A stretch of 62,926 nucleotides of DNA, filler included, from Trichosphaerium sp. ATCC 40318 (Eukaryota; Protista; Tubulinea), in the NCBI GenBank assembly GCA_038496445.1. It is 3 parts of 3 records of this genome, joined end to end, with 100 filler letters (N's around TTAATTAATTAA, not from the genome) between each part and the next. Parts side by side here need not be neighbours in the genome. Positions count along the whole stretch, not along the records: positions 23,052 to 49,331 come from JALMLS010000261.1; 2 more parts are not named here. One strand, written 5' to 3'. The notes beneath the pieces were generated by a model. It did not search any database, had not been told where the DNA came from, and was given only the letters and a program-made list of their open reading frames with translations. Shown in pieces: positions 1 to 45,713 of this stretch (the stretch's first letter is position 1; the number at the start of each line of letters is the position of its first letter). A program made the position numbers and the translations under genes.

Positions 1-720
1 GGGCTTTCGAAAGCACCCATTTAGCATTCAGTGCTTTTTTACAACTCTTTTTTGTTGCAAAAATTTTTGTTTTTCCAAACAACTAAATAGGTCTCGGTAA
101 GTAACCATGTTATTGTATCTCTTTTTTGCACATACTTTTTAATAGCTTACTTTTTCTTTTTTTTCTTCTATGATGAGGGTCATTTCGTCTGCACTACCAA
201 AGTAATTGGAAACGTTTGTTATTGGCAGTGTACGATTCATTGCTTGCACTTCAAATTTAACAGACTTAAAGAGTGTTCAGATATCAGACATCACTTACGG
301 CTAAATTGTCTCCAGAGAGATAAACAAAAAAGAGAATGCTCAGCAAATTCAGCTTCAAAAAAAAGCGAAATTTTGCTAAAAGCACAGTTCACGTGCTCTG
401 GTGACCGAAATAAGCCAACTTTTCTTGATTTCGAGTTGTCCTTGTTCGTAATTAGCTCCAACAAGTGTCAACCAACCCCACGTGTACCCCAGTGCTGTGT
501 GGCTTTTCTGTAAATTACACCAACAGCAAAAATCTCGTTATAAAAGCTGAGTAGCAACAAATAGTTTAAAGCCTTTCGTTTTTGCTGCGCTGAAAGCCAC
601 AACTTAGTGTTTTTATTTGAATACGTGATCTAGAACGCAAATTAACCTAGCGAAAACTATTGAAGTAAATCTACAATCTGTGTCACGTGAATAAGTCAAT
701 GCCATAAACACAGACAAGTA

Positions 721-2608
721 ATGGAAGCATACAACGTCTTGGTATTGCGAAAGGTTGATTTGGCACTTTTGACTAGCATCTAAGCCGTTTGTTTAGAAAA
801 AACAGATTCTTGAAGATATATTGGCTTGGCAGATCAGAAAACAACCTAGTTTCGCGTCTACATCAATATTGGAAGCATGTCAACAGTACGTGAAACTTAT
901 CGCTCTTCATTTGTTCTCAAAGCTACAACAAACGATTTACAGTTCTTGCGACAGCCTAACAAAAACGTTTAACTTTTAGTGTGCATCAATACATCGTCTC
1001 TCACAATGATCCATTCATATCACTCCGATACAAGAAGCGTGGATCCAATTCTACCAATACCATCAGTTCCATAAACGCCAAGGGGATGACATTCACTAAC
1101 TTCACAGGTAGTAATGAATCAGAGATTCCAACAACTTCTATTGTTTGAAATAACCTTGTTCCTTTGTTCTTTAGAGCTACCAACTGAGATTGTGTGGCAC
1201 GTGATAAGCTTTCTAGATGACAAATGTATTCTCGCGATATCACAAACAGCAAAGCCGTATGCGAAGTATTGCCAAAGTCAATTCACATGGCTCTTTGAAG
1301 TCAGTAGAGTAAGTAGGGCTATTTTTTATACTCTGTACTATTATCTGTTTATGACTTACTATTGATTTATCAAGAGCAGAGCTAGAACATACGTATTCTT
1401 AAACAAGTATTACAAAGCTGGTTTGAATCCATACACGGTTCAGAAGACACTCTCCAAACTAAAATACACAAACCGCATGAAGAAAAGAATGAAACAACAA
1501 AACTTAACTGACCGAACAATCTATGCTCACCTTAAAAAACAGCAGTATATACAGAATATCGTTTTCCTTGGCGACAATGTACACATGTGCATGGGAGGAT
1601 TTGCAAGGTCGATAGTGACACCAGACTTTTCTCCATTCAAGAAATGTATTCAAAAGTACACACTGTCTGTTACTTTGAAGGCATCAAAACACAATCCTCA
1701 GGTATCGAACAACACCTTTTTAAACTTACACCACAACTTACACGTGATATCTAGAGTAAATGTGCAAAGGCAATCAAATCTTCAGTTGCTCAAAAACTGA
1801 TTGCTGAAGGCCTTGATACAATTGATGTTGAGGATGATGAGCGAGCCAAATAGTACGGGTTTTCTGTTTTTTCTTGGATGCCATGGTGTTTGTACTAACA
1901 ATGTGATAGTTTCGAAGAAGCTGCTTCAACGATACTGGATAAAGAATACATAGTGATACCAGAACATATTGAAAACATGCCTTGTACACTCCTGCATACT
2001 GATAAGCCCGTTGAATACATTAGCTATATGGAAAGAACTAGCTATCGGTAAGAACAAAAGCTGATATTGATAGGGTTTATATTTTGTAGATTTAAAATGT
2101 ACCCTTCAATATCTCGCACACTATTCGAAAAGCTTTCCATGTTGTACAAGATTGTTGCTTAATATTCTACAACATTGTACTTGGTGAATACCGTGTACCT
2201 GATCCTATCTTTGGCACAAAACTACACAAATCAATACATGAGTTCTCGCTGTGGTGTAATCCTTGATAAAACTCAAATTTTTAGGATCGCTATATTTATC
2301 TATAAAGACGACATTTAATACCTAGTGAGTTCTGTGAGAAGTTCCAGATTGCCCTCAAGGTAATCATATACTCCTCGTTTTGGGAATGGAACTAACACTT
2401 TCTTTCTAGCCACAACGGAGTCTATTTTTGAGTACCTACTGGCGTTATTCACTTCATATGATAAAAGGAGCACACTTAGATGATGATACCCATATATTGA
2501 CTACAGTAAACTCATATTTCATTACTACTCATTCTTGACTTCAAAGACAACTGTGATAAAGCTATCAGACAAATGCTGCTTTCCTCAGCTTTAGGCTATT
2601 AGGATAAA
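721..2608 (+). pseudogene. Multi-exon F-box-containing gene, tandem copy 1 (frameshifted)
   Basis: F-box-like motif LPTEIVWHVISFLDDKCILAISQTAK in ORF 1114-1365, with GT..AG introns between ORF fragments. Near-identical to copy 2, but has small indels (e.g. near 2125 and 2258) that break the ORF seen intact at 5703-6035. Confidence 0.55.
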
Positions 2609-6669: not shown

Positions 6670-7340
6670 TCTACACTAAAGCCTATCACGTGATAAAGCA
6701 TTTACAAAGGGACGCAAATACCCGAAAGAGAGAAAACTAAAATTGAAGTAAATCGACAATCTTGTTTTTGATGCACTTGAGACTAGCTGTTTGTGAAGAA
6801 AAAACAGATTCTTGAAGATATATTGGCTTGGCAGGTTAGTACACGACCTAATTTTGCGTCTACATCGATATTGGAAGCATGTCAACAGTATGTGAAGCTT
6901 ATCGCGCTTTATTTGCTCTCAAAGCTACAACAAACGATTTATTGCGTGTTTCGCCTTTACAGTTTTCTTGCGAATAAGCAAATTAAACCGTTTATTTTAG
7001 TGTTCATCAATACATCATCTCTCACAACGATCCATTCATATCACTCCGATCCAAAAAGCGTGTACATAATTCCACCAGTTCCATAAACGCCAAGGGGACG
7101 ACATTCACTAACTTCACAGGTAATGAATCAGAGATTCCAACAACTTCTGCTGTTTGAAGACGACTCAAGGTACATATACCTTTTGAATGGAACTAACACT
7201 TTCTTTCTAGCCACAACGGACTCTAGTTTTGAGTACCTATGTTCACTTCATATGATAAAAGGAGCATACTTAGATGATGATACCAGTACATTGACTACAG
7301 CAAACTCATATTTTCATTACTACTCAATTTTGACTTCAAT
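6670..7340 (+). pseudogene. Third, internally deleted copy of the same gene
   Basis: Same 5' exons (KKQILEDILAWQ, MNQRFQQLLLFE) joined directly to 3' exon sequence (MIKGAYLDDD..YFHYYSIL). The F-box and middle exons are absent. Confidence 0.6.
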
Positions 7341-7731
7341 GTCAACTTTTCTGTTTTCAACACGCAATGTTGTACAGAGCCTAGATGTGGCTGGTTAGGA
7401 CAGAAATGTATTGGTAATTATTTATTACATTATTGTCTGCCTCATCAAGTTTTTACTAATATTTTCTAGAAAGTGAGTTTTTAACACTTTAGCATCTAGC
7501 AAGATCTGACACTTCTGTCAAATGGTGTAGATCTATCACAATGTGAACTATTTGTGTTATAATGTTGTCCTTCATTGTATGACTTAGGTACCTTACGGTA
7601 AGTGATAGCAAAATTTTCAATGTAAGTTTCAACAGACCATGGAAGGTGATCGCAGTATTTTACCTACGCCAACTGTACACGGTACGATCAAACCACAGAG
7701 GTGTTCAATGCGCTAAAAGCGAATTAAAAAG

Positions 7732-8202
7732 GTATGATGTCCTACAAAGCTATCGTATTACCGCCAAACACGGTATGAATGCCTCAAACACTGTTTGCTG
7801 TATGTTTTGCTTCAAAAAATCAACGTACGTGTGTAACTTACTAGCGTACGCTAGCGCCTACCCCACGCTAACAGAAGCGCTATGGTAGCATCCAGGCAGC
7901 AATGAAGGTGTAACAACGTCAAAACCGCCCCAAAACACCACCAGCGTTGCTGTAGGCTTTGTAAACGCCGCTAGGCGTCAAATATGTAAATAAAAAAGTT
8001 TGCTCTGGGGTTTGTTAAATCACGTGGGTTTGAAACGGTTGGATTCACTGGACAGGCGTGAGGGTAGATCACATTTTAAAAAATGACAATTTGCAAGATC
8101 TGTCAGAAGTGTCAAATCCGTCAGATCTGACAGATCGGGCAGAAACTGGATTTTTTTTGCTAAAAGTCAGTCTGTCTCAAAACTTGAATGAAACAGACAA
8201 TA
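7732..8202 (-). repeat. Right arm of ~460 bp inverted repeat (pairs with 3004-3465); probable non-autonomous DNA transposon sequence
   Basis: Reverse-complement match to the left arm. Both outer ends abut TA. Contains internal palindromic GATCTGTCAGATCTGAC motifs. Confidence 0.85.
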
Positions 8203-8989: not shown

Positions 8990-9586
8990 AAATAGCATTC
9001 CAGAAGGCCATCTTTGCTTATTAAACATCCCAGTTGAGCTACATTATTGTATCATCTATTTGGACTTTGAAGTTTATCTAAAGTGGCCACTGTTATCAAA
9101 ATACAGTGCTACAACAACACGATTCAATGATGACCTTAACAAACATGGTAAATGGTTACAACAAAGAAATTTTGGAAATCCTTACAAAACAAGCAAAAGA
9201 AGTCAAGTTTTTGTGAATGGTATCAAAGAAGGAGTGTACGAGGGTTGGTATAACGGCCAGTTATATGAACAAGGTAACTACTCAAACAATAAACTACATG
9301 GTGAATACAGTGGTACCGTAATGGTCAATTAAAGGCAGTATCACACTACACTGATGGTGAAAAGAATGGGGAACACAAGGAGTGGTACAGCAATGGTCAG
9401 CTATTTGTAAAATATGGGTTTGTCAGTGATAGAATAGAAGGAGAGTATAAATGTTGGCATGATAATGGTCAATTGTATTTCCATTATACTCAAATCAATG
9501 ATATGTTGCATGGGGAGTATAAAAAATGGAAAAAAAATGGTAAATTAGAAGATCATTGTCATTTTTTTTATGGTAAGAGAGAATGA
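8990..9586 (+). pseudogene. F-box-like + MORN-variant repeat protein, frameshifted
   Basis: LLNIPVELHYCII.. then GIKEGVYEGWYNGQLYEQGNYSNNKLHGEY. After a frameshift at ~9310 it reads WYRNGQLKAVSHYTDGEKNGEHKEWYSNGQL..IEGEYKCWHDNGQL..LHGEYKKWKKNGKL..GKRE*. No introns seen. Confidence 0.8.
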
Positions 9587-10010
9587 GAATATGCTCAGTG
9601 ATTACACTGGTCAAATAGTGAAACATTGTAATACATCTAAGGCAAAAGGCAGCGACAATAAATCAACCCTGATAACCATACTAGAGAATGCGTTTACACC
9701 TTTAGTGTGCTTTTTAGTTCATAATCTCAAGTGAACCGCTGAAAGTTTATGCAAAACCAAATTATGCTCAGTAAGTTAAGAACAAAACAACAAAGCAGCA
9801 GTCTAAGCATTTTTTACTTTTCCTTGGTACAACTCGAATAAATCACAAAACAACCTATACTAAAATACAAGTATAGCATCATACTAATAGTTACAAATAG
9901 CAAGTGAAATGCAAGATGGTTTTGAGGTGAGTAAAAACGTTTAAATATTCTGAAAATACAATGCTACATTAGGATTATTTTACTTTACAATGATGTACTT
10001 TGCTTATTAA

Positions 10011-11560
10011 TTATAAGGCATTTTCAACTCTACCTAATGAATCTGCAGTGTTTGTAATAGATAGATTCTTTGATGTACGTTTTGTGGTATGTCTCTTCTT
10101 TGGTACATTGAAACTAGCAACAATTGTAACGCCCAAAATATTGCCAGCAAACATCATGTTAAACAAACTGAACCTGACAGCAATACCACTTTCAAATAGA
10201 GAAACTACTGCTTGTGCTATCAAAGATAATAGAAGATAAGCTATACAACCTGCTGCTACTGATGTTCTCCTCCGTATTTTAAGTAGAAACTCTGATTGTG
10301 TTTCATCTTTTTTAAAGTATTTTTTTACAGCGCTAAGCACTTTCATACTTGTTGTGATACAATAAACAAAGTTTGCTATAAGTATAATAAAGTAGAAGAA
10401 ACTAACTACAATTTGAAATTGTGCGTTTAGTGTTAATCCAGATAGAATAGAGACAATCAAGTCCAAAACAATGATAACTCCACATGTGATAAAAAACGGT
10501 ATTTTCAGTTTCGTCAAAAAAGGAGCTGTTTGCACTGATTTGATAAGTAACGTTTCATGCCAATAGATAACTATGAGTAAGTTTGTTGCAAGAGAAAAAG
10601 GAATATGAAATGTTCCAAGAGTTCGAGAAACAACAAGTGGAACAGCCATTTTAAGAGTTACAAATAAAGGGTATGCAATTATACGAATAACAGCTGCTAC
10701 GATTTCTAGAAATATAGCCTAAAACTCATTAGATATGTACATTATATACGAAGTAAAAGTATACAAAAGTGTCACGTGGATACAAAGTGTTAAAGATGAT
10801 AATTTTGGTTTGTTGTTTTCGGTTCGACTAAAACGTACTACATTTGAGAGTGATTTACACGGCTGGTGCCTAAACTCATACAATCTGTAAACAAAGTATA
10901 TGATGGATATAATATTGGCAATAGCGTTTAAAACTTCGAGAGTACGTGCAATAGGACTCTACATTAAAAAGTTTAGAAACACTGAGCGTCCAAGTAAAAA
11001 AAAAACTTGGTTCAAACAAAATGTATACAAAGCACGTGTCAACCACGTGTTGTCAATACAAAACAACCTTAATTATTCTAACAAACACGTACACGCATAA
11101 AAGGCCGTAGCCTATTATGATCAGCAGTAACATTGACTTGAACTTCGTATTCGCTATTCTCTTCAATAAGATTTCCAACTTCTCTGCCAACAACAACTCC
11201 AGGAATATAAGCCTTTGTATCACCAAATCTAGTATTAGTCCCTGCTTCATCTATCCAAGGTGACAAGCCATTGCTTATTATGATTATAGCAAGTGCTCCT
11301 TCATCCTCAATCCATCTATGAAGCGTATTTCTCATCGCACGTACTCCTGAAACGAAGACAACGCGGTTTGTTTTGTTTGGACACGATTCGTGCACTGCTG
11401 TTAAATTTGTTCCCGAATATAGTGTTTCTTGAAAGTTAGAGCCGTATAGAAGCGCTGGAGAGAAGTATTGTCGTTCTGAACCCGATATAGATACAAAACA
11501 ATTCGTAAAGCATAAGAAGCATCCAACAATGATCAATGCGCGTATGCAGTTGGTATACAT
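10011..11560 (-). CDS. Signal peptide + PA (protease-associated) domain + multi-pass (7TM-like) membrane protein, multi-exon
   Basis: Hydrophobic N-terminus, then PA-like GALAIIIIS..IPGVVVGREVGNLI. At least 5 TM helices in ORF 10011-10649, plus hydrophobic exons between introns. Confidence 0.65.
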
Positions 11561-29655: not shown

Positions 29656-31167
29656 TCACCAAGAAAAAGCTCGCTTGTTCATTAAGGTTTCAGATATGTT
29701 TTTACAACGCTTTAGGCTTATCCTTTTAACATCACCCAAACTATTAATGGCACCTTCAGTAATATTATCATTGCCAACAAGGCTTAATTTATGTGCATCC
29801 ATAAAAACTTTAATCCCTTCATCAGTTACTAAAGGACATCCTCGGAGACATACATTCCTTGCTCCACCGAGATACTTAACGCCTTCATCAGTAATTAGAT
29901 TACATCCTCTCAATGATATGGTTTTGACGCCTCCAAGAGCCTTGATGCCTTCGTCAGTGACTTTCAAACATCCGTATAAACAAATAGAGTTGACACCTCC
30001 GAGATGCTTTATACCTTCACTAGAAACATTAACACATCCTTTGAGATTAATCTCTTGGACTCCAGAAAGTGATTTAATAGCCTCATCACTCACAAATATC
30101 CTATTCTTTAAGTTGATAATCTTAACACCACTCAAAGCCTTGATACCTTCATTTATGTCAATAGTATTCGTATGTTTAAAACTCAAATCGATTGAATGAA
30201 CACCAGCAAGTGCAGCAATACCAACACTAGTTATCTTTTTACAATTTGGTAGACTTATAGTGTGAACGCCAGAAAGAGCTTCAAGTCCGTAATCAGTAAT
30301 ATGCCTAGGTGGGTACATTTTCTGTACACCTTTGAACGCTCTTATACCTTCGTCAGTAACATTCTTCAAAGCGCTCATCTCGACAACTCTAGCTCCTTTA
30401 AAAGCCATCATACATCTATCAGTTAACTTTGTATTGCATCCAAAATAAATAACACTCGCTCCACCAAGAGGTATCAAATCATCATCTGAGAATCTATTTG
30501 AGCCTGTAATGAACTCATCTACTCCAGCCAACTGTTTATAAGCAGAAATTGGTCCCTGTAGCTGAGGTAATGCTAATTTCTTTGCGCCCTTTAAATACTG
30601 TAGTATTCTAGTTGAAAGACCGTAACACCTTAGTATAAGGCTCTCAATACACTTTAAGTAAGAGATACCTTTATCTGTAATTTTATAACTTGATACGCTC
30701 AAACACTTGACACGTGGAATATGCTTCAACCCTTCATCTGAGATATATTTGCAACGCATCAGGTTAATTGTATGTACGTTTGATAAGTGACATAGATGGT
30801 CATTTGTTACTGATGTACCACTCAAGTCAATAGTATGTAGATTAGACATAAGGCGAAAAGAGTCACTTGAAGGTATGGAGTAACATGCAAAGTTTAAGGA
30901 GTTTGCTTTCGCTAATATTTTTGCAGCATCTTCTCCATAATAGCTGTAAAGTTCAATCTCTACTTTGAAATGTGCGTTCTTAAGTGTCTTGAAATACTTC
31001 TCTATGCAATCTATTTGTGAAAGGCTGGTTATAGACGCTGTTACGTATCCCATAGAGTTACGCATAAAGTTTGTCATTTTCCAGCACGTTTTAGTTAATA
31101 AACCCCATTCATAGCGTTGAAGGAACGTAAGAATGTGTTCTAGAATATCGGGGAAGAGGTTGATCAA
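29656..31167 (-). CDS. F-box + short LRR protein (paralog)
   Basis: LFPDILEHILTFL..TCWKM, then repeats LSGVHTISLPNCKKITSVG and LGGVKTISLRGCNLITDEG. Coding body is intronless. True start probably lies in an upstream exon (ACTAAC..TAG near 31210). Confidence 0.88.
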   Translation of the reverse strand: MINLFPDILEHILTFLQRYEWGLLTKTCWKMTNFMRNSMGYVTASITSLSQIDCIEKYFKTLKNAHFKVEIELYSYYGEDAAKILAKANSLNFACYSIPSSDSFRLMSNLHTIDLSGTSVTNDHLCHLSNVHTINLMRCKYISDEGLKHIPRVKCLSVSSYKITDKGISYLKCIESLILRCYGLSTRILQYLKGAKKLALPQLQGPISAYKQLAGVDEFITGSNRFSDDDLIPLGGASVIYFGCNTKLTDRCMMAFKGARVVEMSALKNVTDEGIRAFKGVQKMYPPRHITDYGLEALSGVHTISLPNCKKITSVGIAALAGVHSIDLSFKHTNTIDINEGIKALSGVKIINLKNRIFVSDEAIKSLSGVQEINLKGCVNVSSEGIKHLGGVNSICLYGCLKVTDEGIKALGGVKTISLRGCNLITDEGVKYLGGARNVCLRGCPLVTDEGIKVFMDAHKLSLVGNDNITEGAINSLGDVKRISLKRCKNISETLMNKRAFSW

Positions 31168-31606
31168 GTTTTGATTGTCATTTGCTTCATTTTGATCTGA
31201 CGCGTCTCTATAAGTGCGTTAGTGGCGTATGGGAGCGATAAAAGATGCTGGCGAAGGTAAGTAAGCGAACCAGAACAAACACAAGTAATGTTGCTAAAAT
31301 TAGCAGCTGGCAGCATAACATGCGACAAGGAACGTTAAATAAGATACAAAGCGGAATGCGGTCGACGGTAAAGGTCTTTTCCCAAAAAATCTCCGTGCCT
31401 GTTAGTTTGGTTGCTTGATAGCTCCGCCATTTCTGGAAAGCAATAAAATCGGGATTAGAAGCACACTTGCGATTTTATTCCTAAGTTGTCACACAGCATC
31501 CAAAAACGCGTTTCGAAGTCAACCTCGGTCACGAGGTAAGAAAACACGTGCCTTCTTAGGGTGCTTTATAATCATTAATTGCGCACCTATACTATGTGAC
31601 CTGTTA

Positions 31607-31891
31607 AGAGATGTTTAGATATCTACAATATCTAGATAATCTAGATAATTTCGCCAAAACTAGATAATTCACAAGTATCTAGATAATTTAAAATATCTAG
31701 ATATTATAAAACGTGGTTTCAAATCCCACTTCCTATGGTACAACGTGGTATTTGAAACCATATATGAAGGTGCCTTATTTTCGAATATCTAGATAATTTG
31801 TAATATCTAGATATTTTTCGCAAAACTAGATATTTCACAAATATCTAGATACTGTAAAATATCTAGATATCTCAGATATCTAAACATCTCT
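31607..31891. mobile_element. MITE with TTA target-site duplication (PIF/Harbinger-type)
   Basis: Perfect TIR AGAGATGTTTAGATATCT / AGATATCTAAACATCTCT, TTA at 31604-31606 and 31892-31894, and multiple internal TATCTAGATA palindromes. Confidence 0.85.
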
Positions 31892-31906
31892 TTAGCAGCA
31901 ATTTAA

Positions 31907-34542: not shown

Positions 34543-35403
34543 TCAAGCGTTGCTACCACCATTGCGTTTGGTGTACTTTAACCCCAATTCTTGAAGCGCT
34601 CCTATTGTTATCTGGGAATACAACCTAATGTCAATTTGCTTAAGAGACAACATATGCTTTAAGCAGTCATCTGTAACGTTATAACAATCCCAAAGTTTCA
34701 AGTATTCCAGGTTAACCAAGTTCTTTAAACCATAGTCTGTTACACTGTCAACACCTAAACGCAATCTTTCGACATTTACAAGTGACCTTATTCCATCATC
34801 TGTTATTGCCTCGCCATGAAAAATTAAAACTGTGTTTACATTTGCAAGATGCTTTAGCCATGAGTCAGTTACTGCTTTACCACCGATTGAAATTTTATGT
34901 ACATCTTTCAAACGCTTGATCCCTTCAGCAGTAATTTTCCTACAGCCGTAAATGTCAATTGTGTGAACACCTTTGAGAGCCGCTAATGAGACATCTGTTA
35001 TATTTGTGAGTTGCAAATTAACAGTATGTAGTCCTCCACATGCTAGTGCATGAATACCATCAAGTGTAACAAATGAATGGTCCAAAGAAATGGTATGAAC
35101 ACCAACAAGGTATTTAAGGTCATTGGTAGATGGACGCTTTCCAATGCATTCAATCCTAGTATTTCTAAGCAATGGAGAACCTGTTAGAACTTTGAACTCT
35201 TTATTGTGTTTAATTTTAATGTGTTCAAAGCCAATATTCCGCCGAATGATGTTATAAAACAGGTGACAAACTGTGGTTGTCTTAATACGCTGGTTTCTCT
35301 TTAAATTAACAAGTACAAGCGTTATTATCTCTGGAGGCAAGTCATACACATATCTTATAGGTTGTACCCGAGTGTGTGATGTATCACTGCAGCCTTGATC
35401 CAT
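34543..35403 (-). CDS. F-box + short LRR protein (paralog), intronless
   Basis: DLPPEIITLVLVNL..TVCHLFYNII, linker LTGSPLLRNTRI (shared with the 15826 gene), and repeats such as LKGVHTIDIYGCRKITAEG. Likely ATG at 35403. Confidence 0.88.
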   Translation of the reverse strand: MDQGCSDTSHTRVQPIRYVYDLPPEIITLVLVNLKRNQRIKTTTVCHLFYNIIRRNIGFEHIKIKHNKEFKVLTGSPLLRNTRIECIGKRPSTNDLKYLVGVHTISLDHSFVTLDGIHALACGGLHTVNLQLTNITDVSLAALKGVHTIDIYGCRKITAEGIKRLKDVHKISIGGKAVTDSWLKHLANVNTVLIFHGEAITDDGIRSLVNVERLRLGVDSVTDYGLKNLVNLEYLKLWDCYNVTDDCLKHMLSLKQIDIRLYSQITIGALQELGLKYTKRNGGSNA

Positions 35404-35590
35404 TTGTAGAGCGAATATGTCCGAATAAAGTTGGTATATTACGCACGTGACATTTTTTCGGTAGTTTTTTAGTGTTACTTTTACTGACCGTACTACGGAT
35501 TGATGTCTTGGCGTGTACGTGACGCAAACGTTACAGCTGTAATCAAATAAAAAACATGTATGTCGAAGTAACAAACGTTTAGTCCTTATA

Positions 35591-37647
35591 ATGTCATTGG
35601 CTGTGCGCTTTATCGCTCTAATTGTTATTTTCGCTTGTTGTGACAGTATTGGAGGGCTTCTGACTTCTTATTCTAAATGTGACTACTTTATAGCTCCAGA
35701 TGGAAGCAATTCTGTGCGTTGGCTTCACCATATAGTTCTATCACGTGAAAATATAAGTACTAACGTTTTTTTCGTTTAGAATGGTAATGGATCTCAAGTA
35801 GCTCCGTACAAGAGTTTGCAAGCTGTCTCGGAAGCAACTGGCGATAACCGATGCCAGAATACGTCGAATTGTACACTATGCTTCAAAGGTAAACAACCGG
35901 TTGAGTGTTTAACTTGGAACGACGTAAACAACTGTAGGTGGTACGTACGATTGCTCTCCGAGCGTTGCAAAATGGAATACTACTCAAAGAGGTGTTCTAA
36001 ATATACAACACTTCGACTGGGATAATGTCAAAAGATCTAGGCCAACCTGTCTGATTGATTATTTGTTTGTGAGCAAAAGTCTCCTTACTTTTGTTTTGCA
36101 TAACTCTTTGTTTTAGCATTTGAAAGGCAATCCAAAAGTCACAGCATACATCGACCATTTTTATGCGAGCATTGCTCTCACGGACGGAGACTTTTTCATC
36201 TCTAATTCTGAGTTTCATCAACGCAAGCAACGTACGTAGTCCATCCAATCTATGAAATGAAATGTATTGCGGATGTTATGAATCAATTTTTAAACTCCAA
36301 TTTAAGTCAATGTAAACTATTCAATTAGTTTTACCTTGCGGAAGTTAATTGTTTGTTTTTTAGTTGATGTTACACACACTACAACAACAAGTGTTACACT
36401 TACTTCATGCATATTTGATCAAATAGCCTTGAACCTAGACCTCATAGATTCATTTACAATGGATAAATGTAAATGGACGTTTCCTAACGGACTCATAAAT
36501 GGTACAAAGTTTACCATATATCAAGTTTTGTTCTTATTTTTTTCCAATAGCGAAAGTAGTTAGATTATCCAACAACGTCTTTGATTTCCAGAATGGTGCT
36601 CAATCAATTGTTGAAGTAGGTAACTATGTTAAAACACTTGAATTTCTGGGCAATAAAATTAGCGATTGTGGGCGAGAAACAGTACAAATACCTCTTTGCT
36701 TTAAACAGTTTTGTTTACGCACTTTCTGTAAAAAACTAGCCTTGCTTGAAAGTTGTATCAAAACACAGACCATCCATATCAATGAAATTAGACAATAATA
36801 TATTTGGTGGCGTTGGTCCGTTCATATGGCCTCGATGGGATAACGGAATAGTTGTTACATTAAACATCACTTCAAACAACTTTGGAGTTTCAGTTACGTT
36901 TTGTTTTTGGTTCCTTTCTCTTGCAGCTTGTTTATTATTTTTAGAGTCTTCCATCGGTGTATTTAGATAATGCATTCCAGTACCCTAAACACTTACACAT
37001 TGAAAATAATACCATCACAGAAATACGTTAGTTAAGTTTTTTGTTCCATGTTCTAACTTATTGTAGCAAAATGTAAAATAGGAGAGTTTTCTTACAAGCA
37101 TATATTATTGTGCTTATGGTGCAACGAGGGTACTTTCTCAAACTCCACTACACTTTCAGAATGCTATAAATGCACGAATGGGACTGTTACCAAATATAAA
37201 AGGAGCACAAGCTGTACTACATGCCCAGCAGGAACATATGCAAAGTACATACAAAACACACTTTCTTATCAATAACCTTCAATTTTAGTAGTGCTAACAC
37301 AAACTGTAATCCTTGCCTGGAGTCTTTCTTCTCTCTTCCAGGGTCATCAAAGTGTATAGAATGTAGTGAAGGATTTAAATCAAGCACAAACAAAGATAGA
37401 TGTATAAAGGCACGTGCTACTAAAAAAATAGATAAGAGGACTTATCACGTATTTAGATAAAGGATTATACTTGGGTTATTGGTGTAGTTGTACTTGGATT
37501 AGCAGGTTAGTATTTATATTAATGAGGCCTACAACAAACATTTAATGTTTTATAAAAGGCGTTGGGATGCTTGTTGTTGTTTTAATAGTGTGGCGGAATC
37601 GAAAGCAAACTATACGTGTTTATAGTAGTATAAATGACGATTTGTAA
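35591..37647 (+). CDS. Type I membrane protein, paralog of 12457-15014 (DUF1565-like, beta-helix, Cys-rich repeats, TM)
   Basis: Signal peptide; YFIAPDGSNS|NGNGSQVAPYKSLQAV; CNEGTFS, CPAGTYA, CSEGFKS; TM WVIGVVVLGLAGVGMLVVVLIVW; tail ..VYSSINDDL*. Confidence 0.75.
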
Positions 37648-38724
37648 ATACAACTAATTCTTTAGTACTTCATTAAGAACAGTTTTCCTTCCTAGTTAAG
37701 GGTGCGGTGCTAAGTCATTACTCTACTCAAAACGCATGTCAGACACTCAGACTGCTTGTGGCAGTATCGCACATGCGTAGAGAATGTATTTATGGAATAA
37801 AGACCACTTTTTGGTACAAAAAAGCCTTAAACTTCCTCACCTGGTACCAAAGTATTCGAAACAGTAATTTAATGAACTGTTACATGTTAAAAACATAGAA
37901 ACAAGTGTGTTAAAAGAAACAATTATGATTCGTTGAATTTTAGCAAACATAACGTACAAAGTAAACTTTACAAGGCAGCAAAATTACAAGCATAGTTTTG
38001 ATATGCTTTTCAAGAGTTTTCATTGACATTCTGAGTTGTACAACTACAAACTTAGCATTGTTCTGCTATATGGCTTAATAATACCATTCATACGTGTTGG
38101 TAGTACTATAAGTTCACTACCTGTGTGTTAACCGAAAATTGTACAGAAAGTGGTAAAAATGGTATGTAGCTCACTAACTAAACAAATAAATGCGTATGAG
38201 GGTCCTTGCAACAGAAATTGAAAGTTTTCATCTATTTCACAAACAGTACCTATGTTTTTCACAAACTAGTGCTTGGAATAACTCTAAATGCTGAAGTAGA
38301 TACATAGAAATACAAAACCTAGCTTGTAGAAAAAAAAACCAAAAAGTGACAGTTTTTCACAAAAATTTGGCAGTTTTTATGATCTCCTGGAGTGTGAAGT
38401 TCACGAAAGTTCCCCAAAGCTAACTAAAACGCGTTGATAGGGTAGTGCCATGGCAGCCATACCCATGTGCGCTTGGTAATTTCTGGTATTGGCGAGATCA
38501 GCAAAAAAAAAATTTCATTTAACGAATCAGCGAACTGTTTACGCCATTTAAATAGCGCAGTTGGAAGGACTTTCAGCGTAAATGTCAATACCACAGGTAC
38601 AAGGGGAGGGAAGGAGCACAAAGTGCGAAAAAACAATTTACTTTTAGTAAAAAGAAATCAAAAAACCGCATAATAATAATGTTAGCATACCTATACCAAA
38701 GACTTGACTTTGACTTTTATTTTA

Positions 38725-39425
38725 TTACAAAATACAATCTCTTAACTTTATTCCATTGTATCGGTGTCCAGTACAGTAACCATTAACAACACAAGAATTT
38801 CTCATGATATTAACCCTTGAAGGTTCAAATATGATGTGGTCATACTCAAAGCATTCTTTGTTGTGGCACAAGTGGCTACAATCAACCATGCTTCTATTCA
38901 TACCAGGCCAAACCAAATATTTATCATCTCCAGAGTACCAACCAGAAGAATACTCAGTGTAAATAGTAATGCCAGCACGACAATACTTTGACAAATGATG
39001 TAGCTTAAAATTTTTTTCACCTATCAAAGCCCTGGGATAATCAGAGTGGTCCAAGTTCTTGTTAGCAGTCAAAATAAGGCATCCTGTATCTAGTAATAAT
39101 AAAAAAATAATGAGTCAACAACAGTAAATAGTTAGGATACCCATACACAAAAAAATTGTCGGGCTACAAAAAAAAATTTACCTAATCTTTTTGAATTACG
39201 CATAAGTAGACCAAGTTTAAACCTAGCAACCTCCAAAGGTACAATTCTTAAATCATTAGCAATAACACGGTTCATATCTGCCCATGAGTAGTCTGGCTGC
39301 CTGAAAATCTTGCGCCTTTGGTCCATGATTGAGGTGAGAGTTTGATCCACACCTTGATATTGGAAAATTCTCAGCATTCTTTTGAAATCGGGTAATCTTG
39401 CTAGAAGTTCTCCTGGGTTGTCCAT
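38725..39425 (-). CDS. His-Cys box (I-PpoI-like, His-Me finger) endonuclease, two exons, free-standing
   Basis: SHLCHNKECFEYDHIIFEPSRVNIMRNSC..CTGH..C has the same spacing as I-PpoI [29 protein letters not shown]. A GT-AG intron at 39181-39090 joins ..NSKRL to DTGCLILTANK.. in frame. Confidence 0.85.
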
Positions 39426-39753
39426 TGTTGGTGTTAGTGTGGTAAAATGATGATTATGAAGTATTACAACGTACACAGAAACGAATTCAAACTGGATAGC
39501 GTAAATAAGCGTCATCACGCCACCTAAAATACCGCAGTCAACAACATTAAATAGTTAACGTACCTATACCAAATTGCGTGGGATAAATAAATAGTATCGC
39601 GCCAATTTCTCCACGTGTTAACGTATTCGCTGTTGGAGAAATAGGCGGTATTATTATTATACCGCTTATTACCCCGCTATTGTCGCTATGTACACGTGCT
39701 GAAATCAAATACGTTACCAATGGTCAATTCTAGAGTTAGAGCACCCTTAATTA

Positions 39754-41726
39754 GTGAAAAGTATAAAATGTCCCAATTCTAGGTAAAATGTCCCCACTTT
39801 TCAATTTTTAAAATGCCTCGCAGAAGTGCCGTAAAGGCTAAAAACATGGCAGAGGCCACAAAGGAAGTACTTTAAACTAAAGAAGCGTAAACCTTCACAA
39901 ACACTCTCAATTCGTCAAATTTGCATCACAGTGGCTAAAAAACACTGTGTTAAATCAGAATCGCTACGAAAGCGTGTTCAGAGGGCATTTGCAAAGGAGA
40001 ATTCAGAGAATTTCAAATCTCATGGCAACCAACTTTTTACGGATTTTAAAGAAGAAATGTTGGTTGGCTACTGTTTGAGTTTTAGCGGGCATCATATGCC
40101 TCTATCATGTGCAGCCTTGATATCTATGGCACAAAGTCTGTATAAGAAGAAGAAGTCAACCAGTATGGAAGCTTGGTGTGATGGCTTCACTGAAAGACAC
40201 AATATTGAACTCAAAGCCACTGTTTCGAAGACAATTCGCCGCTGCCGTGTATCTCCTGTCACTCTGCCACGTGTAGAAGCTTGGTGTGATGGTTTTGAGC
40301 AATTCTCAGAGATGTATTATATGAACCCAGATTTGATGTTCAATTGTGACGAAAAGTTGATAACAGCATCAAGTGACGAGTATCAACACATTACCTTTCA
40401 AGATAGAACGATGAAAATTGCTGGGCGGCTGAACAATAACACAAGCAGCCCTCTCACGTTGATTCCGTTTGTTTCAGCCTCTGGATGCGTACTGGTGTCA
40501 ATTTATATAATGGCAGCAAAAAACAAAGGTGATGAACAAAAAGTGCATCAAATGACAGTACCCAGACCAACAAATACCCGCTCTTCATGGCCTAGATACT
40601 ATATATTTCATGGTAAAGGGTATGTGACCAACGAAATTTGGCCAAAAATTCTTGATGTGTTCTTAAAGCACTTGAAAATTTTTCAAGGGGACAGGGTTGC
40701 ATTTTTATTCCTTGATAGATTGGCCAGCCACATTAAAACAGAATCGTTACAAAAATGCCTTGAACAGCATGTACACACTATCACATGGGTGCCTCATACC
40801 TCACATTTCACGCAACCCTTAGATGACAAGCCATTTGCTACCCTAGCTCAGGCATATAAATTAAACAGGAAAATTACAATTGAAAGTGGCACAGAGATCA
40901 AACATAAAACACGACGTTATGACATAATGGCTGTTGCAGCTGCAGAGACCAAAGCACTGTCTTCCAAAATCTTAAAATCGGCATGGAAGTCCGTGGGCAT
41001 TGTACCCTACAACAGAAAGTTGATCTTAAATCATGCTTCAAAAAATGTAGGGGTCCAACCTAAACAATCACCTTCCTTCATCACCGATACTGCTAGAAAA
41101 GCCAAAAACGCTATGGATGAGCTACACAGCCACAGCAATCAAGTAAATGCCCTAACAATCGGTCCAATGACAGTACCAAAAGGGGATGCTTATATTGCTA
41201 CCCAAATGGTTGAATTAGCAAAAAAAAAAAAGATAGATAAAGAACAAGAAATTAAACACAAGGCAAAGCTAAGGCAACTCAAGAGAGATGCTAAACAAAA
41301 AAAAATTGAGGAGGAGAATGTTCGTAGAGAGGAGACAAGACAGAAAAAAGAAAAAAAAAAACAGGAAAAAAAACTTGCCGCTGCTAAGAAGAAGTACAAA
41401 AATGAATGTGAGACCTGTCAGATATGTGGTGAGCGCATATGGAGGGGAGGATCTATGTGGGTGTGGTGTGAAGTCTGTGATCAGTATGGGTCATGCCCAT
41501 GCTGCTTAAAAGAATTTGATGGAAAAAAAATGGTTGAAATGCACAAAGAAGAATGTACAGGAGGGCGATCTTTTGGTAACTGGTACTCAACACAAATGGA
41601 CACATCATGTTAAAATCAGAATAAAAAAGTATTTTTTTTAAGAGCGTAGCATCAATTTTTTGTTCAAAAAAAGTGTTGAAAAGTGGGGACATTTTACCTG
41701 TGGTTGGGACATTTTATACTTTTCAC
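39754..41726 (+). mobile_element. pogo-like (Tc1/mariner superfamily) DNA transposon
   Basis: ~51-bp TIRs GTGAAAAGTATAAAATGTCCCAA..GTCCCCACTTTTCAA / TTGAAAAGTGGGGAC..TTTTATACTTTTCAC, flanked by TA on both sides. Confidence 0.92.
39813..41613 (+). CDS. DDE_1 (DD35D) transposase with C-terminal PHD-like Cys cluster; 5' end disrupted
   Basis: FNCDEK, FLFLDRLASH and PHTSHFTQPLD (35 aa between the 2nd and 3rd Asp); CQICG..WVWCEVC. The likely ATG at 39813 meets a TAA at ~39872, upstream of the long ORF 39931-41613. Confidence 0.85.
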
Positions 41727-41864
41727 TAAATAGGTTATTTCGCAAAAAGATATTCAGCTCTTTCATACTTTTGTTGGCTTTAAACTGAAATCTCAATTGT
41801 GAGGTATGAGAATTGAGCAAACTTTCTTCGCAGTGAAATATTAAAAAGATAGGTGAAGTCCAGT

Positions 41865-42344
41865 TTATTCGTATTTAATGAGCAGTGCAGATAGAATTGC
41901 TTGTTTTCCATTTACAGCCGACTTCTCTACGTACTTCTCAATCTGATATCCTTCATTAAGCAATTGTTGAAGTTTTGTTTGCGCAGCGAAAACATCGTTA
42001 ATAGTGCTAACAGAAATCTTTTTCTTGCGAAAGATGATATTGAGTATGGTGGCATCTAAACAAAAAAAGGAAAATTCATCAGCTAGTTTGTTCTTCAAAG
42101 CACTATTATTCTCTTCATAAGATAAGTGTATCGTCCTTGTGCGTAAGAAAGCAAGTATATACTTGAATAAATCGCCATCACGATCAATAAAATACTTTTT
42201 CTTTAATTTGAAGTTTCCGCTCAATAATCCTGTAAAATAGTTTCGCTCGCCATTAGATGTTAAAGTGGCTTTTGTTGTTTTGTAAACGACACCACCGACG
42301 TTTAGGGTAATACAACATGTATCTGTTTCATTAGCGTCTGCCAT
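41865..42344 (-). CDS. BTB/POZ (KCTD/T1-type) domain protein, intronless
   Basis: ITLNVGGVVYKTTKATLT..YFTGLLSG..YFIDRDGDLFKYILAFLRT. Confidence 0.92.
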   Translation of the reverse strand: MADANETDTCCITLNVGGVVYKTTKATLTSNGERNYFTGLLSGNFKLKKKYFIDRDGDLFKYILAFLRTRTIHLSYEENNSALKNKLADEFSFFCLDATILNIIFRKKKISVSTINDVFAAQTKLQQLLNEGYQIEKYVEKSAVNGKQAILSALLIKYE

Positions 42345-43913: not shown

Positions 43914-45713
43914 ATGCATACAATTCTATTGATTATGATGATCGTAACTTTCTGGCAGATTTCAACAGTGCTAGCGCTAACAAGATTACCATCGATGATT
44001 TCTAGGAACAGAACACTTGGACTTGAACAAAGTCCTTACTTCATTGGTCAACAAGTCGTTGTTAGAAACGCAACGATTTCAGTAATGCCTGGTGTTGTAA
44101 TTAACGCTGAAGCTGAATATGCAAGCATTTTTTCTTTCCAATACAACTCAGCGCTGGTTTTGGTTGGAAACGTATCACACCCAATAGTATTCTCGTGCAC
44201 TGGTGGGTGTTACATCTCTTTCGAATATTCTTGGATAAAATCACCAACCTGGAAGCACGTGATATTTAAACACTTCGTTATCTCCAAACCACCGAACATT
44301 GAAAGATGTCATTTCGAACATGCTGCACTATCCGGCTGCGCTGGTGAGTGTCATTACAACAACATCACTGCAAATGTATCATCCATACAAACAGTATCAA
44401 ATGATAATTACACGTCTGTTCGGGTTACAAACTCTCGTTTGGAAAACTTAAACATGCGAAATTGGGGATCCTTTGAACAAGACAAACAACTTATTGTTTC
44501 TGACTCTATTGTGTCTTGTATTCGATGTTCTTCTGTGATATTCCTCAACTCCAAGGTAGACGTAGATGAATATATCAGTTTATATGGAGCCGTAAATACA
44601 ACGTTTGAAGGTCCTGGAGAGGGAAAAATAATGGCTAGATACCCCGTTGAATATACAAAATGGAATTTGAACAAAACAATATGGGTTACTGCTAACAAAC
44701 ATGGTATCAATGACAATTACATAAAATCAAACAAAGACATTATATTTCGAATGTTCTATTCCAACACCTTTCCCATCACAAGGAACAGATTCTACGCCCC
44801 TGGTATATTCGCCAAAGCTGGGAACCTCTCCTATAACCTGTTGCATGGAGAAGAATATATCACTTTCAGCACAGACTCATTCTACAACCGGTTTATTACA
44901 CCAACTCTGTATTGTTTTTATATATTTGAAGCATCAAGACAACCACGAGAAATAAGGTTCAACGATATCTCTAATGTGACAACTCTTGCTCTTAGGAGCA
45001 TACGCATGTCTATTGACTTTACAAATAATTACGTGGGTGCAGAAAGCGTTGAGAATATTTCCATAATATTTCAAGGCACAAACCGCACGGCGTTTGATCC
45101 AGTACTGCTATCTCCTCCATTGGATATACCACATCCTATCGCCGTCCCTCTTCAACCATCTACAACGTTACCACCAACAATATTGCCAACAACACTACCT
45201 CCAATAACGTTAGCTCCTACCACTTCTTCACCTACAGCGCTTCCAACAACACTACCTCCAACAACATTACCTCCAACCAAAGCACCAACTCATAATCCTA
45301 CACTGCCAATACTAACGACATCGCCAACAACAAATACTCCCTCAACAAAGGCACCGACCTCAGCTCCTACAGGGACTCCTGTAGACGAAACACCAGCACC
45401 AACTACACTAGGTACTGTAATATATTTAGTTTCTTGTACTAACAATGCACAAGTTCCAACTGAAGAACCTACCAATACAGAACCTATTGCACCAGAAGGA
45501 GTAAATGAACCAATTGATGACGCTCCTGTTCAGGCATCAAATGCAAACTTGAAATTAAGCAAAGGAAAAATAATTGCTGCTATCATTATTCCACTTTGTG
45601 TTTGTGCTCTACTTTTTATTATTCTCATAATTTTCTGGATGAAAAAAAGAAACGAGGATCCAAGCAGAAATACAGACTACTGGATAGATTTAACCGATAC
45701 TGTATCAATATAG
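43914..45713 (+). CDS. Type I membrane glycoprotein: beta-helix-like ectodomain, Pro/Thr mucin stalk, TM; intronless
   Basis: Signal peptide; SPYFIGQQVVV..VMPGVVI..GNVSHPIVFS; PTTLPPT repeats; TM IIAAIIIPLCVCALLFIILIIFW followed by KKR. Confidence 0.85.
   Translation: MHTILLIMMIVTFWQISTVLALTRLPSMISRNRTLGLEQSPYFIGQQVVVRNATISVMPGVVINAEAEYASIFSFQYNSALVLVGNVSHPIVFSCTGGCYISFEYSWIKSPTWKHVIFKHFVISKPPNIERCHFEHAALSGCAGECHYNNITANVSSIQTVSNDNYTSVRVTNSRLENLNMRNWGSFEQDKQLIVSDSIVSCIRCSSVIFLNSKVDVDEYISLYGAVNTTFEGPGEGKIMARYPVEYTKWNLNKTIWVTANKHGINDNYIKSNKDIIFRMFYSNTFPITRNRFYAPGIFAKAGNLSYNLLHGEEYITFSTDSFYNRFITPTLYCFYIFEASRQPREIRFNDISNVTTLALRSIRMSIDFTNNYVGAESVENISIIFQGTNRTAFDPVLLSPPLDIPHPIAVPLQPSTTLPPTILPTTLPPITLAPTTSSPTALPTTLPPTTLPPTKAPTHNPTLPILTTSPTTNTPSTKAPTSAPTGTPVDETPAPTTLGTVIYLVSCTNNAQVPTEEPTNTEPIAPEGVNEPIDDAPVQASNANLKLSKGKIIAAIIIPLCVCALLFIILIIFWMKKRNEDPSRNTDYWIDLTDTVSI

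Follow-up and report, generated by a model that had tools for sequence, protein, structure and literature searches.

A free-standing gene for a predicted I-PpoI-type His-Cys box endonuclease outside ribosomal DNA in the protist Trichosphaerium sp.

Nuclear ribosomal DNA (rDNA) group I introns are the textbook home of His-Cys box endonucleases. These homing enzymes cleave specific targets of 15-20 bp. The subject of this work is a gene for an enzyme of this type that lies outside rDNA in Trichosphaerium sp. ATCC 40318 (Eukaryota; Protista; Tubulinea; GenBank assembly GCA_038496445.1). The gene is located in a window of 62,926 nucleotides (nt), the whole stretch of DNA presented, which joins parts of three records of this genome; the analysis was confined to positions 23052-49331 of the window, the 26-kb piece that comes from JALMLS010000261.1. 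The zinc ligands of I-PpoI are C41, C100, C105 and H110, and C125, C132, H134 and C138. The I-PpoI group is recognized by the signature S97/H98/H110/E114/N119 (Kojima and Bao 2022, PMC9587614). The I-DirI gene carries a spliceosomal-type intron (Vader et al. 1999, cited in PMC3679873). I-PpoI-like nucleases outside rDNA are encoded by KolobokP transposons in seven animal phyla (Kojima and Bao 2022, PMC9587614), and these elements have terminal direct repeats of 450 or 660 base pairs (bp) and a Kolobok DDD/E transposase in convergent orientation to the nuclease (PMC9587614). Open reading frames (ORFs) of the Pfam family PF05551 are present on Naegleria rDNA plasmids (PMC12482156).

The Trichosphaerium locus contains what we take to be an intact nuclear gene for a 202-residue free-standing His-Cys box endonuclease (I-PpoI type, His-Me finger group 12), most likely belonging to a selfish lineage; the probability of this reading is roughly 0.7. 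The gene is outside rDNA, group I introns and the neighboring transposon. Rfam returns 0 matches at the gathering score over 23052-49331 and 0 at E ≤ 1 over 37500-40500, with no group I ribozyme and no rRNA. A first-pass annotation of this DNA had described a free-standing His-Cys box gene outside rDNA with no group I core or rRNA flank; the Rfam result agrees with that description, as do the PF05551 match and the fold match given below. The parts of the gene are as follows.

39425-39182, minus strand: coding exon 1, 81 codons plus 1 base, with the ATG at 39425-39423 and a reading frame open from 39518.
39181-39090, minus strand: predicted spliceosomal-type intron, phase 1, 92 nt, GTAAAT...CTAAC...polypyrimidine (T-rich)...CTAG.
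39089-38725, minus strand: coding exon 2, 120 amino acids, the whole His-Cys box / His-Me finger nuclease domain, with the stop codon TAA at 38727-38725.
38877-38734, minus strand: catalytic and zinc core within exon 2, with S71, H72, C74, C79, H84, E88, N93, R96, C99, C105, H108 and C118 (exon-2 numbering).

Exon 2 identifies the enzyme. The hidden Markov model search that the first-pass annotation had proposed matches the exon 2 protein to PF05551 (zf-His_Me_endon) with 39.8 bits and E = 6.2e-10, above the cut-off of 27. A phmmer search of the PDB aligns SHLCHNKECFEYDHIIFEPSRVNIMRNSC to I-PpoI with identical spacing of H98, C100, C105, H110, N119 and C125; the first five of these equivalents had been claimed from the sequence, and the alignment confirms them and adds C125. 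The His-Cys motif reads SHLCHNKEC-x4-H-x8-N-x5-C. Residue-by-residue alignment equates H72 with I-PpoI H98, the general base, and N93 with I-PpoI N119, the metal ligand. The group signature residues S97 and E114 are matched by S71 and E88, both invariant in the family alignment. In this 32-sequence alignment S71, H72, C74, C79, E88, N93 and R96 are invariant and H31, D69, H75, H84, C99, C105 and C118 are nearly invariant. The eight Cys/His residues of two predicted zinc sites (C3, C74, C79 and H84; C99, C105, H108 and C118) are all present and conserved, and C3 (39081-39079) corresponds to the first zinc ligand of I-PpoI, C41, as judged from the structural alignment range. The second Cys/His cluster claimed earlier is present as C-x5-C-x2-H-x9-C, with a spacing that differs from that of I-PpoI. 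No stop codon or frameshift occurs across the 120 exon-2 codons. A profile of the 32-sequence family has I-PpoI as its sole PDB match (E = 1.8e-7).

The structure of the exon 2 protein was predicted with AlphaFold2 (AF2) from an alignment with the 32 relatives, which gave a predicted local distance difference test score (pLDDT) of 93.9. Foldseek places I-PpoI first (E = 0.02, probability 0.93) and I-HmuI next. VIA-align superimposes model residues 1-120 on residues 39-140 of the I-PpoI chain with Z = 6.1 and a root-mean-square deviation of 3.3 Å over 90 residues, which makes I-PpoI the best solved match in the structural comparison that had been proposed. The lead of I-PpoI is small: I-HmuI gives Z = 5.3 (72 residues) and Smad MH1 about 3.5, and phage HNH nucleases in BFVD match with E = 2e-5 and a template modeling (TM) score of about 0.5. 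Because the phage HNH nucleases match at a similar level, the fold is called a His-Me finger of the I-PpoI/I-HmuI kind, and the sequence signature together with the C-terminal Cys/His cluster tips this call toward I-PpoI. The model shows exon 2 to encode a complete β-β-α-metal nuclease domain that is predicted to fold like I-PpoI residues 39-140. Such a domain would cut DNA as I-PpoI does: the His would activate a water, the Asn would bind a single Mg2+ and a β-sheet would lie in the major groove.

The exons were searched and folded separately and were concatenated only to count length, frame and stop codons. The joined frame of 609 nt has one terminal stop and encodes 202 amino acids plus the stop; this agrees with the earlier claim of a minus-strand gene with a 92-nt GT-AG intron that keeps the frame, and the start is now placed at 39425-39423. 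The start codon is in a strong, Kozak-like context (ACAATGG), and use of another in-frame ATG at 39515 would add 30 hydrophobic residues. Without splicing, the exon-1 frame runs into a stop within the intron, and the exon-2 frame lacks an ATG upstream of its conserved domain, which begins at the first residues of exon 2. The donor, branch-like site, pyrimidine tract and acceptor all occur in the single arrangement that keeps the frame. These signals point to splicing of the 92-nt intron, which would join the N-terminal region to the nuclease. An alternative acceptor (ACAG) 6 nt downstream of the CTAG acceptor is also in frame, and an alternative donor within the intron (GTATCC) was rejected because it breaks the frame. 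Two AATAAA hexamers follow the stop codon.

The codon usage of exon 1 scores 0.121 bits per codon, the best of the six frames, and is coding-like in the proposed frame only. This value compares with 0.132 for exon 2 and 0.137 for the neighboring transposase and is reached by only 2.5% of intergenic windows. Exon 1 has no match in Pfam or the Atlas and no similarity to the N termini of 150 relatives, and its single-sequence AF2 model is all-helical with low confidence (pLDDT 55). Exon 1 probably encodes a lineage-specific N-terminal region of predicted helical structure.

When 1.84 billion cluster representatives were searched exhaustively with HMMER, 224 of them matched at E ≤ 1e-3. The best relative is 41% identical (E = 4.9e-16) and there was no self-match; therefore, the gene is not among these representatives. 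The top matches are unnamed singletons of 80-340 amino acids from Logan, ENA, JGI and NCBI, and PF05551 also matches 31 of the 32 aligned relatives. A word-index protein search with exon 2 returned nothing, and a profile word search returned unnamed PF05551 proteins only. Motif-limited scans found no relative in 185,579 prokaryote species and none in IMG/VR. The phylogeny of the family is poorly resolved and the query has no well-supported sister.

The surroundings of some relatives are informative. Metagenome contig L003 has a group I intron at 75-410 on the minus strand (Rfam RF00028, 94.6 bits) and an adjoining ORF on the opposite strand (474-1064, plus) for a 197-residue classical His-Cys box endonuclease, which hhalign matches to the family profile with 98.1% probability and E = 8e-14. 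A close relative of this ORF is present on L002. Metagenome contig L001 has a His-Cys box nuclease gene at 3-179 (plus), truncated by the contig end, that lies tail-to-tail with a Mutator-like transposase gene at 565-1683 (minus; PF20700, E = 2.8e-13), as described for KolobokP. The GC-rich contig L004 encodes a 251-residue protein with two His-Me finger domains (7037-7789, plus) next to genes for a YqaJ-like recombinase/exonuclease and a SET-domain protein (8998-9819 and 9819-10481, both minus), and this could be a viral or mobile-element context.

Most likely, the Trichosphaerium gene is a remnant of a selfish lineage or still active within it, whether as a homing-type nuclease that stands free or as one derived from a transposon, and a housekeeping role is less likely. 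We lean toward a selfish or transposon-derived origin because the family is patchy, fast-evolving and unnamed and has no relative in the motif-limited prokaryote scan, because some relatives lie beside a group I ribozyme (L003) or a Mutator-like transposase (L001), and because KolobokP provides a precedent and the protein is not in the MMETSP-derived data though its neighbor is. The pogo-like transposon 320 bp from the gene also fits such a context. Several points weigh against the reading as a whole. The protein is not among 15 billion predicted proteins, including the MMETSP-derived set that contains the neighboring BTB protein. In structure the similarity to I-PpoI is moderate (TM 0.39, Z 6.1), and the BFVD phage HNH nucleases match about equally well. 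The exon 2 protein lacks the first 38 residues and the C-terminal domain-swap tail of I-PpoI; therefore, any dimerization or long-site specificity is putative. The single locus gives no sign of mobility. Splicing is predicted from the sequence and expression is presumed; because exon 1 has no relative, its coding status depends on the ORF, codon usage and splice signals.

The alternative that survives best is a domesticated host gene, in which a former homing or transposon nuclease, now single-copy and vertically inherited, serves in repair, recombination, defense or sequence-specific DNA binding. The intact ORF that keeps every catalytic and zinc residue is consistent with domestication, as are the ordinary RNA polymerase II features of the gene (a predicted spliceosomal-type intron, a start codon in a Kozak-like context and AATAAA past the stop). 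GC content is even at 35-40% and the gene is like its surroundings, with no element boundaries or paralog in the 26 kb, and Smad MH1, which is derived from the His-Me finger fold, is a precedent (PMC3384342). A conserved host function would ordinarily come with close orthologues, and the best relative among 15 billion proteins is only 41% identical. The protein is also missing from the MMETSP peptides, where its neighbor is found, and belongs to a patchy family of singletons. We regard domestication as unlikely, although it is the best placed of the alternatives.

Less likely still is a non-functional relic, with exon 2 as a stranded domain fragment that has no start and with exon 1 and the intron as a chance ORF that happens to have GT-AG signals. 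The lack of relatives of exon 1, its low-confidence fold and the absence of a transcript-derived protein from the databases fit a relic. Against a relic, the invariant residues are all intact in 120 exon-2 codons free of frameshifts and stops, exon 1 has a coding-like codon usage in the correct frame only, and the splice signals lie in the one frame-keeping arrangement.

The first-pass annotation had also placed the gene in a cassette bounded by direct repeats, with a long hairpin upstream. The repeat is present in three copies.

39536-39573: repeat copy A, which precedes the ATG by 110-150 nt; its gene-strand sequence is TTTGGTATAGGTACGTTAAC, extended by 18 nt that copy B also has.
39113-39150 (core 39131-39150): repeat copy B, within the intron, with identities of 29/34 (to copy A) and 16/20 (to copy C).
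38681-38700: repeat copy C, which follows the stop codon by 25 nt, lies just past the two AATAAA hexamers and is 18/20 identical to copy A.
39605-39665: two small hairpins upstream of the gene, with a 9-bp stem (39605-39613/39634-39642) and a 7-bp stem (39645-39651/39659-39665).

The 18/20 identity between 38681-38700 and 39554-39573 is real, with an average of 0.01 matches in shuffles. All three copies have the same orientation, A and B are alike over about 34-39 nt, and there are no further copies elsewhere in the 26-kb piece. On the gene strand each copy has a branch-point-like TAYSYTAAC, then a pyrimidine-rich run, then AG; therefore, the copies resemble three versions of an intron 3' module, and they look like one module before each exon and one after the last. 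In copy B the branch-point-like CTAAC stands some 40 nt ahead of the acceptor AG and is likely to be the branch site of the intron. The repeats are probably local sequence modules and not insertion boundaries. A tandem-duplication origin was rejected, as the two inter-repeat units (430 and 385 nt) are dissimilar and have nothing else in common (local alignment score 20, shuffle mean 20.3). The semi-palindromy of copy A (6/8 symmetric pairs) is not significant when the choice of center is allowed for and is not found in B or C. The upstream stems exist, and in place of a long hairpin they are only modest, 9 bp and 7 bp; the region has an energy of -15.3 kcal/mol (z = -3.3), with 1/200 shuffles equally stable. 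The 9-mer GTTAACGTA of copy A (39556-39564) recurs in a hairpin loop 62 nt away (39618-39626), perhaps as part of a fourth core.

A small mobile cassette is very improbable; in this reading the 20-nt direct repeats would form its ends, either as a target-site duplication or as recombination sites, and the nuclease would move it. The 18/20 repeat is far above chance, the outer copies lie just outside the transcription unit, and a weak low-complexity inverted repeat (38660-38680/39650-39670, 81%) is found just beyond them. However, there is a third copy within the intron, and it resembles the upstream copy more closely than the downstream copy does; therefore, the repeat does not simply bracket the gene or mark a cassette. 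No terminal inverted repeats were found at the gene, the inter-repeat segments share no sequence, and the outer inverted repeat is ATT/AAT low complexity. Break-repair homing leaves no duplications, 20 nt is unlike DNA-transposon duplications, and the gene is not a retrocopy because a poly(A) tail is absent and an intron is predicted. The 26-kb piece contains no second copy of the nuclease gene, no copy of the repeat motif away from the gene and no larger flanking repeat. It is just as doubtful that the three repeats, of 20-39 nt, are the enzyme's own recognition sites. The gene would then target itself, and recombination between the repeats, induced by the nuclease, would let it spread or rearrange. 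If true, such a unit would parallel, in minimal form and in a protist, the mechanism proposed, and untested, for the KolobokP terminal repeats. The triple repeat is the only unexplained feature of the locus.

A transposon lies upstream of the gene.

39750-41730: pogo/Tc5-like DNA transposon, apparently intact, 1981 bp, starting 320 bp upstream of the nuclease ATG.

Its inverted ends of about 55 nt (39750-39804/41676-41730) are 91-93% matched and are flanked by TA target-site duplications at 39748-39749 and 41731-41732. The transposase ORF (39931-41613, 560 residues) has a DDE_1 domain, a weak HTH_Tnp_Tc5 match, a lysine-rich region and a C-terminal Cys-rich, zinc-finger-like tail. The weakest alternative joins nuclease and transposase into one composite element in the manner of KolobokP. 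Such pairings are seen in KolobokP (PMC9587614) and L001, and only 500 bp separate the two genes. A composite is nevertheless very improbable: the transposon's inverted ends and its flanking TA duplications delimit the transposase and leave the nuclease gene outside, a third pogo end is not found beyond the nuclease (38580-38602 offers only a chance 10-mer, E = 1.4), the 26 kb have no long repeat, direct or inverted, around the pair, and the genes are divergent where those of KolobokP are convergent.

The other neighbors are two F-box/leucine-rich repeat (LRR) genes, a BTB_2 gene and several orphan ORFs. The BTB_2 gene (41865-42344, minus) is a single exon for a 159-residue protein of the potassium-channel tetramerisation type, and its exact sequence is in the MMETSP-derived set, which makes the source a marine microbial eukaryote. 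The F-box/LRR genes (29656-31167 and 34543-35574, minus; RNI-like, LRR_6/LRR_4) are intron-less, have repeated GVHTISL...ITDEGI units and are probably members of an expanded family. A palindromic element of about 290 bp (31606-31892) resembles a miniature inverted-repeat transposable element, with 38-nt inverted ends (87%) and many internal ATATCTAGATA copies. An orphan ORF of 599 residues (43914-45713, plus) has no Pfam match and encodes an N-terminal hydrophobic segment, a Pro/Thr-rich, mucin-like stretch of degenerate 15-nt tandem units (45160-45354) and a C-terminal membrane anchor.

The novelty implied by the first-pass annotation is overstated, as non-rDNA I-PpoI-like nucleases are published (KolobokP, PMC9587614), and uncharacterized free-standing eukaryotic PF05551 proteins are already in protein databases and clustered in protein atlases. 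The overall picture is unchanged, since KolobokP and these entries had already shown the escape of the family from rDNA. The locus adds a protist case in which a His-Cys box enzyme is encoded by a nuclear gene of ordinary appearance, with a predicted intron. The locus also points to a clade of considerable size that has no name (224 representatives at E ≤ 1e-3, with no member found in the prokaryotes scanned), which may link the intron-borne, transposon-borne and free-standing forms and could supply new long-site specificities for genome engineering.

The protein shares with the I-PpoI group (I-DirI, I-NjaI) the β-β-α-metal core, the S-H-L-C-H-N-x2-C-x4-H-x3-E-x4-N-x5-C spacing, two Cys/His zinc clusters and the fold of I-PpoI 39-140, and its gene shares with that of I-DirI a spliceosomal-type intron, here predicted. 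Unlike the genes of that group, the present gene lies outside both rDNA and group I introns. The protein differs from I-PpoI in an unrelated 81-residue N terminus of predicted helical structure, the absence of the C-terminal swap tail and a second zinc cluster of the form C-x5-C-x2-H-x9-C, and identity over the domain is about 20%. The phage HNH_3/I-HmuI type (His-Me finger group 2) has a similarly compact fold and shares the Pfam family PF05551. The query, however, has no Pfam HNH_3 match, its family profile does not match I-HmuI in the PDB, and its C-terminal Cys/His cluster is of the I-PpoI type.

The resemblance to KolobokP consists of a eukaryotic nuclear location outside rDNA, the same signature and a small protein encoded beside a DDE-type transposase. 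In contrast to KolobokP, the present gene comes from a protist and has no 450- or 660-bp terminal direct repeats in the 26 kb, and the adjacent transposase is a divergently oriented pogo/Tc5 DDE_1 enzyme whose own ends leave the nuclease out. The domain architecture is that of the free-standing eukaryotic PF05551 proteins (ESM Atlas clusters from Ascomycota and Rotifera; unnamed Logan, ENA and JGI proteins P0002-P0009), which have in common GC[WL]I ... GYP ... H..K ... SHLCHN..C...H..FEP...N..RN.C.....C.GH.....PDC[IL]. These proteins have 80-340 amino acids and no annotation, and the best is 41% identical to the query. The exon-1 region is unique to the query, whereas a basic C-terminal tail and an ILKY motif that are present in some relatives are both missing from it. 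Taken with KolobokP, the Naegleria plasmid ORFs and the atlas clusters, the Trichosphaerium locus is therefore a divergent addition to a known kind.

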